Source: Camelus dromedarius
Lineage: Eukaryota
Assembly: GCF_036321535.1 (NCBI RefSeq)
Contig: NC_087451.1
Location: 55,924,001 to 55,988,000 of the forward strand
Direction: 5' to 3'
DNA: 64,000 bases
The notes beneath the pieces are model-generated. The model did not search any database. It was not told the DNA's origin and worked only from the letters and a program-made list of their open reading frames with translations. Positions 686 through 48,186 of the stretch are shown here, piece after piece. A program made the translations under genes and the position numbers. Every line of letters begins with the position of its first letter. The stretch's first letter is position 1.

Positions 686-764
686 ATATCCTGCTGGATG
701 ACATCGTTCTCACCCATTCTCTCTTCCTCCCTACGGAGAAATTTCTGCAGGAGCTACACCAGTA
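686..764 (+). CDS. RAPGEFL1: RAPGEFL1 coding exon ((D)ILLDDIVLTHSLFLPTEKFLQELHQ(Y)), REM-like region
   Basis: Acceptor tacag at 681-685. Exon ends CAG TA, followed by the U12-type donor ATATCCTTTT. Confidence 0.9.
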
Positions 765-1651
765 ATATCCTTTTGTGGAGCTTGCAAAAGGGGAGGTTGG
801 GAGGGAGCCACTCCCCCAACTCCACATGTGATGTGAGAGTCCAGGCTCTTCCCTAGAAAACACACTGGGTTCCATTCCAGGTTTTCCACTCAGCAACTGG
901 GTGACTTGGGGCAGGTCACCTAACCTCCTGGGGCCTCAGTTTCCTCTTCTGTAAAATGGGGATAAATAGCACCTGCCCTCCCTCCCTATGGGGCTGCTGT
1001 GGAGACCATTCTAATAGCACATGTGGGAGTGTTTTGGAGACTGCAGAGCCATGTACCAGTGTAAGGTGTTATTATTCTATTAAGAGTGCCTCTCTCCCCA
1101 CTGAATTATTGCTCTAAACATCTGGTTGCCCAGCAATTTATTACAGGGTCTGATGTAAACATCAGGTCACGGCCGCCCTGTGGTAGGGTCTACTAGAGAC
1201 AAGTTGCTGGCTGGGCTATTCATAGGGTCTCATGGAAGCATAGGGCCTCTCGCTGAGTTATTCTAGAACCAAACTGTGAATGTCAGGCCAGTGAGAAGAA
1301 TATCGTAGCCTCTCTTCAAAATACCAGGCCTTACACTAACGTATGGTTAGGTTGTGGTCAGCACCACTGGCCTTTATCAGCCTGCTGTGGGCTGATCCGA
1401 GGTTAGGTGGGACCAGGTAGCTTCTAGTGAATTTCCTCAAGTGAAATTCAAACAAACAGGAGCCGGACGTGGCCAAGTGAGTGCCATCGGGCATGGGAGG
1501 ATCTTGGCTCCAACGACCTTTTGATCTCCTTTCTCCCTGGCCCAAACCTAGAGAATTTTGAAGGGTGGCCTTGCCTCCCTTTGACTCCTGTATCCCTTCC
1601 CAGTCTCCTCAGGTCTGCCTGCCCAGGACTTTTTCTTAACTTAGGGGTCAG
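765..1651 (+). other. RAPGEFL1: U12-type (minor spliceosome) intron with AT-AG termini
   Basis: 5' end ATATCCTTTT (765-774) matches the U12 RTATCCTT consensus. Branch-site-like TTTTCTTAAC (1631-1640) lies 11 nt before the terminal AG (1650-1651), with no polypyrimidine tract. Only this junction (TA|C = Tyr) keeps the frame. Confidence 0.88.
897..1075. mobile_element. MIR SINE inside the U12 intron
   Basis: gggtgacttggggcaggtcacctaacctcctggggcctcagtttcctcttctgtaaaatggggataa, the MIR core. Confidence 0.8.
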
Positions 1652-1787
1652 CTTTGTTTGGGCAGGAGGCATGGAGGGCTCTGAGGGGCTGGGCCGGAAG
1701 CAGGCCTGTCTAGCCATGCTCCTTCATTTCTTGGACACCTACCAGGGGCTGCTGCAGGAGGAAGAGGGGGCCGGCTGCATCATCAAG
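1652..1787 (+). CDS. RAPGEFL1: RAPGEFL1 coding exon (FVWAGGMEGSEGLGRKQACLAMLLHFLDTYQGLLQEEEGAGCIIK)
   Basis: 136 nt, donor aag|gtgggc at 1788. Contains an in-frame ATG at 1671 in strong context (GGCATGG). Confidence 0.92.
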
Positions 1788-2016
1788 GTGGGCCTGGGAT
1801 GAGAAGGTGGGTGAGCAGGCTGTTTGCTCTGGAAGGGGGCCCCTTGGAAGGAGCCATACTTCTCAAGCTGGGTACCTGGAAGGAAAAGATGTCAGCCGGC
1901 CTTAGCTTATATGGTTCTTCTTTGCTTGAAGGCATGGAGACCCTGCCTTGCCTTTGCAGAGCCTCATGCCATGGATGAGACACTCGCCCTCACCTTCTCT
2001 CTTCTCCTCTCCGCAG

Positions 2017-2114
2017 GATCTGTACCTGCTGATTATGAAGGACGAGTCCCTTTACCAGGACCTCCGAGAGGACACACTGAGGCTGCACCAGCTTGTGGAA
2101 ACAGTGGAGCTAAA
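2017..2114 (+). CDS. RAPGEFL1: RAPGEFL1 coding exon (DLYLLIMKDESLYQDLREDTLRLHQLVETVEL(K))
   Basis: Pyrimidine tract + ccgcag acceptor, donor aa|gtgagg, 98 nt. Confidence 0.95.
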
Positions 2115-6186: not shown

Positions 6187-6398
6187 NNNNNNNNNNNNNN
6201 NNNNNNNNNNNNNNNNNNNNNNNNNNNNNNNNNNNNNNNNNNNNNNNNNNNNNNNNNNNNNNNNNNNNNNNNNNNNNNNNNNNNNNNNNNNNNNNNNNNN
6301 NNNNNNNNNNNNNNNNNNNNNNNNNNNNNNNNNNNNNNNNNNNNNNNNNNNNNNNNNNNNNNNNNNNNNNNNNNNNNNNNNNNNNNNNNNNNNNNNNN
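6187..6398 (+). CDS. RAPGEFL1: Inferred RAPGEFL1 coding exon hidden in a 212-nt N gap
   Basis: The upstream exon ends in phase 0 and the downstream exon begins in phase 2, so an exon of length 3n+2 is missing. The central CDC25 helices are absent from visible sequence, and GC-rich flanks run into the gap. Confidence 0.75.
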
Positions 6399-6462
6399 GG
6401 CTGCGCAGGGGGCAGGCCTCGGCCACCGGACCGCCCACTGACCCCGCCTCCCGCCCCTGCAG

Positions 6463-8487: not shown

Positions 8488-8612
8488 GCCTTGAAATGGA
8501 GGCGTCCCCCCATCACCTGCAGACCAAGGCCTATGTGCGCCAGTTCCAGGTCATTGACAACCAGAACCTCCTCTTCGAGCTTTCCTACAAGCTGGAGGCC
8601 AATAGTCAGTGA
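8488..8612 (+). CDS. RAPGEFL1: RAPGEFL1 last coding exon ((C)LEMEASPHHLQTKAYVRQFQVIDNQNLLFELSYKLEANSQ*)
   Basis: ccctag acceptor, stop TGA at 8610-8612. Confidence 0.96.
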
Positions 8613-21178: not shown

Positions 21179-22338
21179 AAGTGGGTCTACACAGTGAGCA
21201 GTGAGCAAGGAGGGGACTGAATGGAGATGAGGTTGAAGAGCTGGGAGTTTATATCTACCATGTCTCTGGCCCAATCGCCATCATCCCACCATCAGGCATA
21301 CAGGTACATACCTGAAAATCTTATATCTTTGCATCTATGGATCCCTATGCCCGGAATGTGTTCCCTGCCTTCTCTGACTAGTGATAAAATCCTACTCATC
21401 CTTCAAGGCCAGATTCAAAACCATTTACAAAACCTTCTCCCATTCTTTAGCAGGAAGTAATCACTCCCTTGTCTGATGTCCTACAGCCCATATATCCCCA
21501 AGACAGTAATCACATGCTGACTTGTATCTCAGCCAGGTGTTTACATGCCAATCTGCCCACCACGCAGTGAATTCCCTGAAGGCAGATGCTCTGTCTTAGT
21601 CACCTCCATAGCCATCTTCTCATGCCTACCTCAGTGCCTGGCCCACAGCAGGTACTCAATGAATGTTGTGATATCTACTTGACTAGTGGGTGGTGCCCAG
21701 CACTTCTAATGGCAGATAAGAAGGAAAACAAAAATAATAACAACTTATGGTTTATCACATGCTTTCCTATTCATTACCTCATTTGAGCCTTCCAACAACC
21801 CTATGAAACAGTTGGGACAGGTAGTTAGACCCGTTTTACAGATAGAGTAGCTGAGGCCCAAGGGCATGCAGTTAGTAAGTAATGAGAACTAAGTCCCAAT
21901 TCTTCCCCCTTACTTCGGATTCAGCTTTTAAAAATGATGATGGAGAGACCCAAAGAACATTTTGAGGATATAAGGCAATGGGGTTGACTGCACTAGAAAA
22001 GCACTTTTGTAGGTGGACTAGGGAGAGATCCTTACACAGCTGGGACGGAGTCAACAGCAGCCACACCAGGAAAGGCACAGGATTCCTTTCCGTGCCCCAA
22101 GCAGCTAGAAGAGTCCGCAGCACCATCCCCCATCCCTGGCCAGAGAAAAAGGAGACGGATGTTCACGAGTCTGCGGGTCGGGCGGCTAAGATGACGTTAA
22201 CAATGACTTGTTAGCAGAGCTTGCTTCTCTGTCACCATGACAACTGGAGCTTGACAACTGGAGCTTGACTACTGAGACCTTGCAAGGTTGACTGGGGCAG
22301 GTTCTTCGTTACCTCGAAATTAGGAAAGGATATTTATG

Positions 22339-43076: not shown

Positions 43077-45608
43077 ATGAGTGACCTAAAGCTGCAGACT
43101 AAAACGGAGAGAGAGCAGTGTCAACTGCAAGCCAGGCAAGGATGCCAATTCCTCCTCCCCCTCCACCACCTCCCGGTCCTCCGCCACCTCCCACTTTTAA
43201 TCAGGTAGGTAGCCCTTCCCCCCAGCTATCTCACAGCCTTTGTGAATACCTAGTGTACTCAAAGGCATGTGGTATAAGAGGATGGAGGATAAGTAAGTAA
43301 AGTCTATCTTCATCAACTAGTTCTCTGATTCCTGAGAAGTCCTCCTAGGACCATAATGTTTTGACTTTTTGTTTGTTTGTTTTTGTCCTGATTTAGTCTA
43401 AATGGGGATGTGGACAGGTGGCATCAGAGTAGGAACTATTTGTTCTATAAATCTCAGTGTATCCTTTCTCTGACATCCCTGAGAAAAGAGATGGCAATTC
43501 CTAGTGCTTGTTTCTTGCTACCATTTCATCTCCTCTTCTGCTCCAAAGCCAAGTCCATCAAGTCTAACCACCCCCTTCCCAATCAAGAAAGAAAGGAGTT
43601 AATGGAATTAGTAAGAAGACTAAAGTTTCAATAATGGGAAGGGGGAAAAAAGCAGTGTGGCTTCTGAACCAAGAAGGCAGCCACCTTTACTATATCTGGG
43701 TTGTGATACCTGGAGTCACATGAGAAAGAAGGAACCTGGGTACTTTAACTCATTTTTGTAAAATGTGACTTTAGAGAACAAACACCCCAGAGGGGTGTTT
43801 GTGTGTGTGTGTGTGTGCTTAACAGATGAGAAATTTTGCCCCAAAGGGGAAGAGTGACTTACCTAGCTAATTTGTTTGTTTCAAACTGAGACTAGAGTTC
43901 AGGTCTGCCAACCTCTAGGTTTTTTCCTGTAACTTTTGGTGTTTAGACATTTTGTTTTGAGGATATGTAGGAATCCCCCTTTAGATAAACTTGTATGTGG
44001 AAGTCCAAAATAAGTGAAGTAGATAAAAGCAGAGGTGCTCTTGATACAGTGGGGTTCAGGGACCCATAGTATATTCACGCATCTCTGTTGCCTCTTGCAC
44101 GACTGCCCTGCATCATGCCATCTTAGTCATCCAGCAGTAGCCTTTTGTTGGGGGTTTCCTGTATGTCAGTACAATTTAGAAAAGCCACATAATTTTACTC
44201 TATACGTATATATTGTTTGATGCTTTTACAACAAGAATTTATTTATATAATTAAAAAAGAAGGAAAATGTGCAGATAAGCAAAAAGAAGCAAGTAAAAGT
44301 CATCTATAATACCATCACCCAGATATGAGACAGTTTCTGCCTTCAGGAGCTCCCAGTGGAATGAGTGAGACAGACAAGTCAACAGGCAAAACTTGTGCTA
44401 CACAGAGATAAATGGGGCCACAAAGAAAGGCACCTCACTAGTGGTCGGAGGGAGAGGAGGCAGTCAGACAAGGCGTCTAGTGGGGAGATGAGCCTTGAGC
44501 TGAATCTTGAAGGATGAGTCGAGTTTAGCCAGAAAAAGAAGGGAGAGAAGAGGGCACTCGAAGTTGAATGTGGAAGGGTGCTGTTTGTGAGAAAGCACAG
44601 AGGTTTGGATTATTGCTTAAAGGTGGTATGGGAGCTGAGGCTGGGGGTATAGGCAAAGGGTTTGGATTTTTCTCACAGTGGTGATGGGGAGATGCTGAAG
44701 TCTCTTCATCAGGAGTAACATGATTGGTTTATATTAGAAAGATCACTCTTAACAGCGTGGACAGTGGATTGGGAGTTGAGACTAGAGACAGGGAGGTTGA
44801 GACTAAGAAGTCTTTTGCAATTGAAAATTGAGAGTCTGGACTAAAGCAGTGAGGGTGGAGAGTGGGCACAGGAGACACTGAGAAAGTAAAATCTAACAGT
44901 CTGATGACAGGGGGAAGAATGAGGAAGAGGAAGGAGATTTGAATGACTCTGGTTGGGTGACTGGTTGAATGATGGTGCTATTTAAAAGAGAAACGGGTTT
45001 GTGGAGGAGGGTATGAACTCAATTTTAGACATGTTTAGTTTTCTCTTTACCAAACTAATACGTTCAAGAAATGTATGAACTGTGTTAAGCAAAATGGAGC
45101 AGTTACCCATAATCCAGCCATTCATCACAGTTTTGTGTGCCCTTCTCTTCCCTCCCTCCCTCTGTATCTTTCTACTTTTCTCTTTTTTTTTCTAATACCT
45201 TTATTATGGTATGATACCTGGACAGTAAACTACACATATTTCAGAAATACAATTTGATGAATTTTGACAGATGTATATACCCATGAAACCACCACCACAA
45301 TCCACAGATAGCTGACATTTCCATCACTCCCCAAGCAGTGCATATTTTGAATTCCTGATTTATCCCTTCCCACCTCCTTTACCCCCAGGTAACCATAAGT
45401 TTGTTCTCTATGTCTGTGAATCTGTTTCTCTTTGGTAGATAAGTTCATTTGTGTCCTTTTTTAAAAAAAAATTCCACATATAAGTGATATCATATGGTAT
45501 TTTTATTTCTCTTTCTGACTTAACTTCACTTAGAATGACAATCTCTAGGTCCACCCATGTTGCTGCAGGTGGCATTGTTTTATTCTTTTTTATGGCTGAG
45601 TAGTAGTC

Positions 45609-45646
<38 letters not shown>

Positions 45647-48186
45647 ACACGTACACCACAACGTCTTTATCCAGTCATCTATCAGTGGACATTTGGATTG
45701 TTTCCATGTCTTGGCTATTGTAAATAGTGCTGTTATGAACATTGGGGTGCTTGTATCTTTTTGAATTATATTTTCCTCTGGATATATGCCCAGGAGTGGG
45801 GTTGCTGGATCATATGGTAAGTCTGTTTTTAGTTTTTTGAGGAATCTCCATGCTGTCCTCCACAGTGCTGCACCAGTTCTTTCTACTTTTCTTTAAAAGA
45901 AAAAGAGGTTGTGCTTTATATACATACTGATTTCTTATCTGCTCTTCTTACTCATTAATCCATCACGAATGACTTGTGATGTCATTAAAATAGTTAGTGA
46001 TATCATTAAAGTTCTTTATTGTACTAAAAATGGAAAAAACTAGAGAATACCAATAAACATAGAAAATGTTGAACTACCTATAGTTAACCTTTGTTAACAT
46101 TTTGTATGTTTTACATATTCATTGTAGGCACACTAGAAAATAATACAGACAAACATAAATAATTATTACCCAAAATTAACTTTTGCTAGCATCAGTGTAT
46201 ATCCTTCCAGAAATTTTCTATATGTGTGTATCTTTTTTTCTTCCAAATATAAGCCAGCTACTATTTATTGAGCTCTTACTATAGACCAGCCACTGGGCTG
46301 GGTTCTTCAAAAGTGTTATTTAATTCTCAAAAACTACCCTATGAGATAGAGTCTATTGTTATTCTTGTTCTACAGAAGAGAAGACTGGAATTACGCTGTG
46401 TGTATTGTTTTATAATATTTTTTTACTTGATGGTGTCAAACATTGACTTCCATGAAAGCTGTTTACTTCTACATTTTTAAGCACTTAACTGGCATCCATT
46501 GTATGGTTATACCATCGTTGTTCTTGGCTGAACTTTTAGATTACTTTCAGCTTTATGCTATTATAAACCAGTTTTTGCTATTATTATCGTCTTCGTGCAT
46601 GTCTCTAATTATTTTCTTAAAGTCGGATCCTGGAAGTAGGAGTCTTGTGTTAGACCTTTGAAAGATCTTTAATACATAAATTACTTTCTAGAAAAATCAT
46701 ACCAATCTGTCTTACCCCAGGGAGTAGAAAAGAGTACCTGTTTTCCTGAATCCTTGTGCCCACTGCAGGATGGTTATATATTCTGTATGTTTTTGAACAT
46801 CTTCAGTGTGCCAGGCACTGTGCAAGCCAGTGGTCCCTACCTTTATGAAGCTAGCAATCTCTCTTTGTAATTTGAACCTCACCAGTTTCATCTATAGATA
46901 ATGATACTGTTTACACTGCTTTTTTAAAATTTATTATAGTTGAAATTTTTTTTTCATATTTGCTGGCTCTTTTGATGTCTCTTACACAATGTTGTTCGCA
47001 TCTTTTGCTTATTATCCTGTTGATTTCTAAGTCGTTTTTATATGTTAATGCTCTAGAGATTTAGGACACTGCCTTTGTTTCTATCATATGTTACATTTGT
47101 CAAAGACAATTTTCCTTCCCATGTGTCATCTGCTTATTATATTCCTAAGTAAGTAATTCTTAGTAAGCAAGTATGTTAATCTTTTCCTGTATTTTGGTTG
47201 TCTTGCTTAAAAAGTCTTCCCTTACTTATTTTTTCCATATAGTACTTCTGTGATTTTATTATTTCTGTGATTTTATTTTTTTACACTTAAATTTTATAAT
47301 TCAGCTAGAATTTGTTTGAGAGTAAAGTTATGAGGTAGGTATTTAACTTTATTATTTTTTTCTAAAAATTAACCAGTTGTTACACCTTGTATTTAATAAT
47401 CTGTCTTTTCTGCCCTGGTGAAATACACTTTTACTGTTTCTTGTATAGAGCTAAGCCTGCTTATGGACTTTCTGTTTTGTTCCATTTATCTAGTCGTCTG
47501 TCCCTGTGCCCCTGTTGTAGCTGATCATAGGAACAGTTCATGATTTAAGTGAGATAAACACAGAGAACAAACTTTACCGTTACCAGAGGGTAAAAGGGGT
47601 GGGAAGGGATAAATCAGAAATTCGAAATTTGCACCTCTTGGGGGGTGATGGAAATGTTAGCTTGATTGTGGTGGTGGTTTCATAGGTGTATACATCAATC
47701 AAAATTTATCAGATTGTACATCTGAAATATGTGTAGTTTACGGTACAGGAATTATACCACAATAAAGGTGTTAAAAAAAAAGTTTAAGAGACAATGAAAG
47801 TAATGTGCTTAGCACAATGCCTGAGATATAGTAGCATATAGTAAAATAAATGTTTGCCTTGATGTTGATAATACACTTAGAGCATCAGACGTAGAAGCCT
47901 AACACATAGGTACTCAGTAGGTGTCAGTGCAGGCCTCCTATCAGAAGCTTCTGAAGAGGCGGGAGACCTATACCCTTTACAGGAGGTACCACACGAGAAA
48001 AAGTTCCAATAAGGATGATAATGGACATTGATGCTGTCGTTTGGCATGTGTATCTTCTTAGGTTAGACAGGCATCTCAGGGAATCCAGTTGACTTATGAC
48101 ATTCATCGTGAGCTTGTGATGAAGGGGACTGTTTAGGGTGAACTTACATTTCCCTCTTCAGGCAAACACTGAGCCGCCCAGGCTGA
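43077..48186 (+). CDS. Candidate overlapping upstream ORF of WIPF2 (join 43077-43204, 48162-48186; 50 aa)
   Basis: ATG 65 nt upstream of and out of frame with the main ATG. Open through exon 2 and into exon 3, stop TGA at 48184-48186. Translation is not demonstrated. Confidence 0.4.
43142..43204 (+). CDS. WIPF2: WIPF2 first coding segment (MPIPPPPPPPPGPPPPPTFNQ); exon begins at 43073
   Basis: Acceptor ttttcag at 43066-43072, ATG in AAGGATGC context, donor cag|gtaggt. Confidence 0.96.
45183..45860 (-). mobile_element. Artiodactyl-type L1 3' fragment with atypical (L1MC-like) tail; contains (GT)n at about 45611-45644
   Basis: tgttgctgcaggtggcatt...ggctattgtaaatagtgctgttatgaacattggggtgc...ggagtggggttgctggatcatatggtaag. 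Confidence 0.85.
47551..47780 (+). mobile_element. Short L1 3' fragment with the same atypical tail as 45183-45420
   Basis: gagaacaaacttta...gggataaatcagaaattcgaaatttgcacctcttggggggtgatggaaatgttag...caataaaggtgttaaaaaaaaa. Confidence 0.82.

Follow-up and report, generated by a model that had tools for sequence, protein, structure and literature searches.

The catalogued U12-type AT-AG intron of RAPGEFL1 in the dromedary genome: splice signals, apparent AT-AC ancestry, and gene-model errors

A stretch of 64,000 nucleotides from the Camelus dromedarius genome (contig NC_087451.1, positions 55,924,001 to 55,988,000 of the forward strand; hereafter, the window) was analyzed around one intron of the RAPGEFL1 gene. 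This intron occupies positions 765-1651 of the window and has the termini AT and AG. It is very probably the camelid orthologue of a known, constitutive U12-type (minor) AT-AG intron of RAPGEFL1, the stop codon at its 5' junction and the ATG at 1671 in the next exon not being a selected switch. The intron is genuine, and it is already catalogued, not new. A first-pass annotation of the window had described it as a U12-type AT-AG intron of RAPGEFL1, a rare subtype; splice signals, orthologous loci, and published intron tables all agree with this description.

Splice Signals of the Intron

The intron opens with ATATCCTTTT (765-774), in which the 5' splice site ATATCCTTT matches the U12-type consensus at nine of nine positions. 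Near the other end, TTTTCTTAAC (1631-1640) contains the branch-site element TTCTTAAC, one C>T change away from TCCTTAAC. The branch A, at about 1639, lies 12 nt from the last intron base (1651); the optimum distance between branch site and 3' end in U12 introns is 11-13 nt (PMC3584512). No polypyrimidine tract was found between the branch site and the 3' end, where the 11 bases following the element, TTAGGGGTCAG, are purine-rich. The intron thus shows the signals of the A-type (AT-AN) U12 class: a 5' site of the form /RTATCCTT placed at the first intron base and a TCCTTRAC-like branch element at a suitable distance. The window letters at the intron start, the branch element, the terminal AG, and the downstream ATG (1671) are all as the first-pass annotation had given them.

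The 5' motif is not rare by itself. Within the 64-kb window, the RTATCCTTT 9-mer has 3 matches against 1.6 expected, and TTCTTAAC has 2 matches against 3.2 expected. Both motifs falling exactly at the ends of an intron that is bounded independently by protein homology would be expected by chance at about 1e-9, as estimated from these match rates. The other two RTATCCTTT matches, at 22325-22333 (minus strand) and 43459-43467 (plus strand), were rejected as minor introns, being at the chance rate and tied to no coding exon. The next exon of WIPF2, near 48163, has an ordinary pyrimidine-tract acceptor.

The AG at 1650-1651 had been taken for the sole acceptor that preserves the reading frame. This proved too narrow, since the AG at 1602-1603 also keeps the frame open, adding 16 codons. 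This second AG, which follows a good pyrimidine tract (1575-1603) and precedes the U12 branch A by 36 nt, resembles a latent U2-type acceptor that could be activated if minor splicing fails, and it is the probable source of read-through gene models.

Published Records of the Intron

The U12 intron of RAPGEFL1 was listed as AT-AG in human and mouse, and marked "Conserved," in Table 3 of Sheth et al. (2006; PMC1557818). The same study lists 11 human AT-AG cases; these are out of about 670 U12 introns, a total back-calculated from its Table 2 (33 non-canonical introns, equal to 4.92%). The human intron was listed again as U12 AT_AG, with the branch site TTTCTTAAC and the donor string ...CAGTA/ATATCC, in Datasets EV1-EV3 of de Wolf et al. 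(2021; PMC8280824); here and below, the slash marks an exon-intron boundary. The human and mouse introns and the camel intron are orthologues that share the same exon pair, the 5' site ATATCCTTTT, the branch site TTTCTTAAC, the AG end, and the split Tyr codon. The camel intron, 887 nt in length, differs from the human one in having TTAGGGG instead of TTAAGGG after the branch site.

Similar introns are known in unrelated genes. Those of NUP210, USP21, and INPP5B also combine an A-type 5' site with a last base G, are conserved between human and mouse (PMC1557818, Table 3), and belong, as does the RAPGEFL1 intron, to the CENATAC-dependent AT-AN class.

Splicing of the human intron responds to the state of the minor spliceosome. 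In myelodysplastic syndrome (MDS) with mutated ZRSR2, the mean percent-spliced-in value (PSI) of the RAPGEFL1 intron was 0.217 vs. 0.044 in controls (adjusted p 0.040; PMC8280824, Dataset EV2). On depletion of CENATAC in HeLa cells, PSI rose from 0.385 in controls to 0.838 at 24 h (p 0.011) and was 0.730 at 48 h, with very low RAPGEFL1 counts (base mean about 9-11) and no adjusted p (PMC8280824). In patients with mosaic variegated aneuploidy (MVA), PSI was unchanged (0.286 vs. 0.230; PMC8280824). A-type minor introns as a class are spliced less efficiently (PMC8280824), and the AT-AG combination has been described as a disfavoured, poorly spliced intermediate (PMC3584512).

Probable Use of the 764^1652 Junction

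When the two flanking exons are joined at 764^1652, the translation runs in frame as ...LHQ-Y-FVWAGGMEG..., and the translated exons fit RAPGEFL1. The corresponding ...ELHQYFV... was found in proteins of 548-620 aa (P0025, P0031, and P0032) encoded by Logan contigs of 2.2-2.5 kb; contigs this short must derive from spliced mRNA, given a gene length of more than 8 kb. HQYFV was also found in RefSeq-type models from meerkat, bison, tenrec, alpaca, manatee, rabbit, chinchilla, pika, Tasmanian devil, and wombat. The camel 5' site with its flanks (12 exon codon bases, the split TA, and 14 intron bases) is identical to that of tenrec over 28 nt; over the same 28 nt, one base differs from meerkat.

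A GT inside the end of the upstream exon (CCA/GTAATA, 762-763) offers a different junction. Under this alternative, the intron would be an ordinary U2-type GT-AG intron (762-1651) spliced at 761^1652 to give ...LHHFVW..., and its AT-AG termini would be spurious. Joining this GT to the AG at 1650-1651 does keep the frame, with His replacing Gln-Tyr (LHHFV for LHQYFV), and LHHFV is printed in the Ensembl-type models P0035, P0040, P0048, and P0049. Read against the U2 consensus, the donor CCA/GTAATA lacks G at both -1 and +5, and the acceptor has no pyrimidine tract. The spliced Logan transcripts and the RefSeq-type models give HQYFV instead, and the RefSeq-supported human and mouse introns are AT-AG (PMC1557818), with the human donor cut after the TA (PMC8280824). 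Furthermore, birds and snakes have the same intron after CAA CA/ATATCC, where no GT is available. A GT-AG intron at this position is thus extremely unlikely, and the GT at 762-763 is the source of the LHHFV models, in which a GT-AG junction was forced.

Evolution of the Intron Ends

The junction DNA was read in eight other species: Xenopus, Eretmochelys, Coturnix, Crotalus, Suricata, Echinops, Sarcophilus, and Tachyglossus. ATATCCT stands at the same codon position in all eight orthologous loci, and each has a U12 branch site at a distance of 8-12 nt from the 3' end. In the non-mammals the termini are AT-AC, the sequence from the branch site to the 3' end being ...TTCCTTAACAATGGCAC in Xenopus laevis, ...CCCTTAACCCTGTGCCCAC in the hawksbill turtle (Eretmochelys), ...CTCCTTAACGGTGCCAC in the Japanese quail (Coturnix), and ...ACCTTAACCTGCCTCTGCTAC in the rattlesnake (Crotalus). 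In the mammals the termini are AT-AG: ...TTCTTAACTTAGGGGTCAG in the camel window, ...TTCTTAACTAAGGGGTCAG in the meerkat (Suricata), ...TTCCTTAACTTAGGGTCAG in the tenrec (Echinops), ...TTCCTTAACTTTGGAGTCAG in the Tasmanian devil (Sarcophilus), and ...GCCTTGACCCTCAGCAG in the echidna (Tachyglossus). AT-AG was thus found in five of the five mammals read, in the echidna only after its model had been re-read. The deposited echidna model (L003) forces a GT-AG intron, CA/GTAATATCC...CCTCAG/C, and gives LLHSFV. The DNA itself, at about 6388-6400 and 10395-10413 of L003, reads TA/ATATCCTTTT...GCCTTGACCCTCAGCAG/C, a U12 AT-AG intron. There, GCCTTGAC is followed by two AGs, 3 nt apart and both in frame, and either one gives the AT-AG reading.

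Protein models that read through the intron 3' end carry a trace of the terminal dinucleotide in the residue before Phe. This residue is Ser (AG/C) in bat, rodent-like, and goat models and Thr (AC/C) in those of many birds, crocodile, turtle, and lizard. The split codon varies as well: it encodes Tyr in therians, the re-read echidna, and Xenopus, Cys or Arg in turtles, and His in birds, squamates, and other amphibians.

Comparable introns are present in two paralogues. Human RAPGEF3 (EPAC1) and RAPGEF4 (EPAC2) have AT_AC U12 introns after ...CAC CA/ and ...GCC CA/, respectively, with C following (PMC8280824); RAPGEF5 is absent from the U12 tables of that paper. Like the RAPGEFL1 intron of birds and snakes, the RAPGEF3 and RAPGEF4 introns lie in the REM domain, in phase 2, after ...CA and before C, and they share with RAPGEFL1 the 5' site ATATCCTT and a branch site of the TCCTTGAC type. 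They differ from camel RAPGEFL1 in the AC 3' end and in splitting a His codon rather than a Tyr codon. With AT-AG in mammals and AT-AC in non-mammals and in RAPGEF3/4, the history of the 3' end is most simply read as AC to AG in stem mammals. In this history, the EPAC family would have had in common an ancient AT-AC intron with a split His codon; in RAPGEFL1 its last base would have changed from C to G in stem mammals, and the intron would have been AT-AG ever since.

The Junction Stop and the Downstream ATG

The first-pass annotation had further proposed that the intron is wired to act as a stop-codon switch upstream of a strong internal ATG. Slow minor splicing would leave a stop at the junction, after which the transcript would either undergo nonsense-mediated decay or yield, from the ATG at 1671, an N-truncated guanine nucleotide exchange factor (GEF) of about 456 aa. 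The letters on which this proposal was built are real. Retention of the intron reads TAA, use of the AG at 1643-1644 reads TAG, and use of the AC at 1639-1640 reads TAT TAG, all as described; the ATG does stand in the context GGCATGG; and many placentals do have a Met at this codon. The human intron is also retained more with ZRSR2 mutation or CENATAC loss (PMC8280824).

On closer comparison, the stops proved to be automatic, because an exon ending in TA forms a stop codon with any following A or G. Immediate stops are given by five of the seven other AG or AC sites between 1600 and 1670. Moreover, the two alternative acceptors named lie only 5 nt (AG 1643-1644) and 1 nt (AC 1639-1640) from the branch A, which makes them unusable given the optimum of 11-13 nt (PMC3584512), and the AC belongs to the branch site itself. 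Nor is the junction stop conserved: a retained intron ends translation at once where the split codon begins with TA/ or TG/, but in quail and rattlesnake the frame stays open for 58 and 12 sense codons, respectively.

The ATG at 1671 is likewise not conserved. The Met is replaced by Arg in Myotis, by Val in rabbit and rodent-like models, by Leu in chinchilla and echidna, and by Val or Thr in marsupials, and it has no counterpart in sauropsids and frog. In a retained RNA, eleven ATGs with short open reading frames (ORFs) between 765 and 1670 come ahead of it, and in full-length orthologues the upstream ORF has about 200 codons. Ribosomes re-initiate poorly once they have translated a long upstream ORF. 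The eleven preceding ATGs and the long upstream ORF therefore make re-initiation at 1671 implausible. Transcription from within the intron finds no support in promoter signs either, as 765-1651 has an observed/expected CpG ratio of 0.18, no CpG island, and no TATA. The product would also be a poor one. In the frog orthologue, RasGEF_N occupies residues 120-212, with the junction at residue 160; a start seven residues past the junction would thus yield a protein with half its REM domain instead of a clean REM-less GEF. In addition, unspliced U12 transcripts are believed to be retained in the nucleus and degraded there (PMC3584512), so that it would not matter where a stop lies.

A regulated switch of this kind is, on these grounds, most unlikely. 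The cross-species comparison indicates that the junction stop and the downstream ATG are an accident of a split Tyr codon and a non-conserved Met, not a built-in device. As to the broader suggestion that minor-spliceosome activity could toggle the output of the gene, the part that stands is that the human intron is retained more under impairment of the minor spliceosome; the change to a truncated product finds no support in the codon and ATG comparisons.

Intron Retention and RAPGEFL1 Dosage

A further possibility, compatible with a constitutive AT-AG intron, is that the mammalian AT-AG end is deliberately weak. Basal retention would then be high, and the RAPGEFL1 level would be sensitive to CENATAC and the minor spliceosome, with no switch between proteins. 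Consistent with this, AT-AG is disfavoured (PMC3584512) and yet was kept in the five mammals read here and in human and mouse, A-type introns are less efficiently spliced, and the human basal PSI of 0.385 in HeLa cells rises to 0.84 on CENATAC depletion (PMC8280824). The HeLa values, however, come from the very low counts noted above (base mean about 9-11, no adjusted p), while basal PSI is merely 0.044 in the MDS controls and is unchanged in the MVA patients (0.286 vs. 0.230). AT-AG may also have persisted simply through neutrality, since any last base is tolerated at U12 3' ends. We consider a dosage-setting role unlikely, with a small but real chance of being correct.

The idea that slow removal of a minor intron is a rate-limiting step that can lower the output of its host gene goes back to Patel et al. 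(2002), as cited in PMC3584512. The retention of the human RAPGEFL1 intron, which increases with ZRSR2 mutation, resembles what this model describes. As presented in that citing paper, the model differs from the proposed switch in that it concerns mRNA level and nuclear decay and includes no second start codon.

A combined version would have the AT-AG end frozen throughout mammals as a weak, dosage-setting end and a little half-REM protein made from 1671 in the lineages that bear the ATG. This is very improbable. If it were true, a half-REM protein would be made from unspliced or intron-initiated RNA in camelids, carnivores, primates, and others.

Proposed Splicing and Its Weak Points

In the constitutive AT-AG intron preferred here, the 5' site ATATCCTTT would be recognized by U11 and U6atac, and TTCTTAAC would pair with U12. 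Distance would determine the 3' end, which would fall at the first usable dinucleotide located 12 nt from the branch A, and the join 764^1652 would rebuild the Tyr codon inside the REM domain. Removal of the intron is probably somewhat inefficient, as for other A-type minor introns, so that unspliced RNA would go up when the minor spliceosome is impaired. An N-truncated protein from 1671 would not be expected.

Several points weigh against this account or parts of it. The use of 764^1652 in camel RNA is argued from sequence identity with relatives. In RNA-labelled runs (X2, X7, X9, and X12; reproductive system metagenome/transcriptome), 0.39-0.67 of the sampled words of the intron were found, with the non-intron remainder at 0.35-0.8 vs. 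an exon share of 0.37, values at which retention is inseparable from pre-mRNA or genomic DNA. These intron words possibly reflect appreciable unspliced RNA, or equally genomic DNA or pre-mRNA. The AT-AG call in echidna depends on re-reading a model that had been forced to GT-AG. The case for homology with the RAPGEF3/4 introns is built on phase and flanking codons, and the loop concerned aligns ambiguously at the protein level. Finally, the non-conservation of the ATG at 1671 speaks against an old function, which leaves room for a lineage-specific use.

Selective retention of the intron, as inferred from the word shares in the same runs, was rejected, since flanking non-exon words are also present in them.

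Gene-Model Errors at the Junction

Protein models P0002-P0138 were compared at the junction. That gene finders mishandle this site, as had been predicted, was borne out: the internal Met serves as the start in the models P0052 (Camelus dromedarius), P0064 (gibbon), and P0125 (goat). Other models print HHFV, HDFV, QDFV, or HQVSFV at the junction. Read-through models translate the 3' end of the intron (...LNLGVSFV..., e.g., P0037), and bird models its 5' end (...LHQQYPGG...). In all, a large share of the public RAPGEFL1 models, which come from many species in the protein collections searched, are wrong at the single 764/1652 junction, by a false start, by read-through, or by the deletion or exchange of one or two residues.

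Gene Identity and Exon Layout

The features of the locus are collected in Table 1. The exon upstream of the intron is preceded by an AG at 684-685, and its last letters are ...CAC CAG TA; it maps in six other tetrapods, and tblastn of orthologues onto the window also places it. The downstream exon opens with C TTT GTT..., the C completing the Tyr codon and FVWAGGMEGSEGLGRKQACLAMLLHFLDTYQGLLQEEEGAGCIIK following, and it is closed by a normal GT at 1788. Its peptide is 100% identical to residues 1-39 of the dromedary model P0052.

A 45-residue exon peptide found RAPGEFL1-type proteins in a search among 1.8 billion representatives. With a longer query, 292 RAPGEFL1 homologues were found at E<=1e-10, from mammals to amphibians, named "rap guanine nucleotide exchange factor-like 1," and the family aligns to structures of EPAC2 (Rapgef4) at 7.8e-113. 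Pfam searches with single RAPGEFL1 exons gave no match, the exons being too short. By tblastn of orthologues, 13 RAPGEFL1 exons were located on the window, from 686 to the stop codon at 8607-8609, where the protein ends in ...SYKLEANSQ. One exon, which reads LEFVDYVF...KKFIKIAA in orthologues (about 179 nt), was left unplaced by tblastn, and a run of N at 6187-6398 occupies its place. In other species the homologous exon has about 177 nt in whole codons plus the split bases, which is compatible with the 179 nt assumed in the first-pass annotation, on which its count of 456 aa depends. Another run of N (2348-2494) falls within an intron, and an imperfect (TG)n microsatellite is located at 505-535, in the intron upstream of the exon at 686-764.

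Table 1. Features of the RAPGEFL1 locus around the minor intron (positions in the window).
Feature	Position	Strand	Basis or remark
RAPGEFL1 coding exon, 79 nt, first half of the REM domain	686..764	+	Ends ...ILLDDIVLTHSLFLPTEKFLQELHQ + TA of split Tyr
Decoy GT inside the exon end (CCA/GTAATA)	762..763	+	Joined to AG 1650-1651, gives in-frame LHHFV
U12-type (minor) intron, 887 nt, termini AT-AG, phase 2	765..1651	+	Window letters, orthologue comparison
U12-type 5' splice site ATATCCTTT	765..773	+	9/9 consensus matches
U2-like AG behind good pyrimidine tract (1575-1603)	1602..1603	+	In frame; adds 16 codons
U12-type branch-site element TTCTTAAC	1633..1640	+	One C>T away from TCCTTAAC; branch A about 1639
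Nearer AG, 5 nt from branch A, too close for use	1643..1644	+	Would read TA/G
Terminal AG of the minor intron (AC in non-mammals)	1650..1651	+	Letters, orthologous loci
Next RAPGEFL1 exon, second half of the REM domain	1652..1787	+	C + FVWAGGMEGSEG...AGCIIK
In-frame ATG, context GGCATGG, ordinary internal Met	1671..1673	+	19 nt into exon 1652-1787
Ordinary GT-AG (U2-type) intron with pyrimidine tract	1788..2016	+	Window letters
Following RAPGEFL1 exon (DLYLLIMKDESLYQDLREDTLRLHQLVETVEL + AA)	2017..2114	+	Translation, tblastn of orthologues

Implications

The proposed stop-codon switch fails the cross-species comparison, and no new mechanism is opened by this intron. Its practical value lies in annotation, as it is among the few AT-AG minor introns and is misleading to gene finders. 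The addition made here is modest: AT-AC ends in frog, turtle, bird, and snake RAPGEFL1 and in RAPGEF3/4, against AT-AG ends in every mammal read. AT-AG being stable across all mammals sampled, a splice-site pair regarded as a "disfavoured intermediate" can persist for a very long time.

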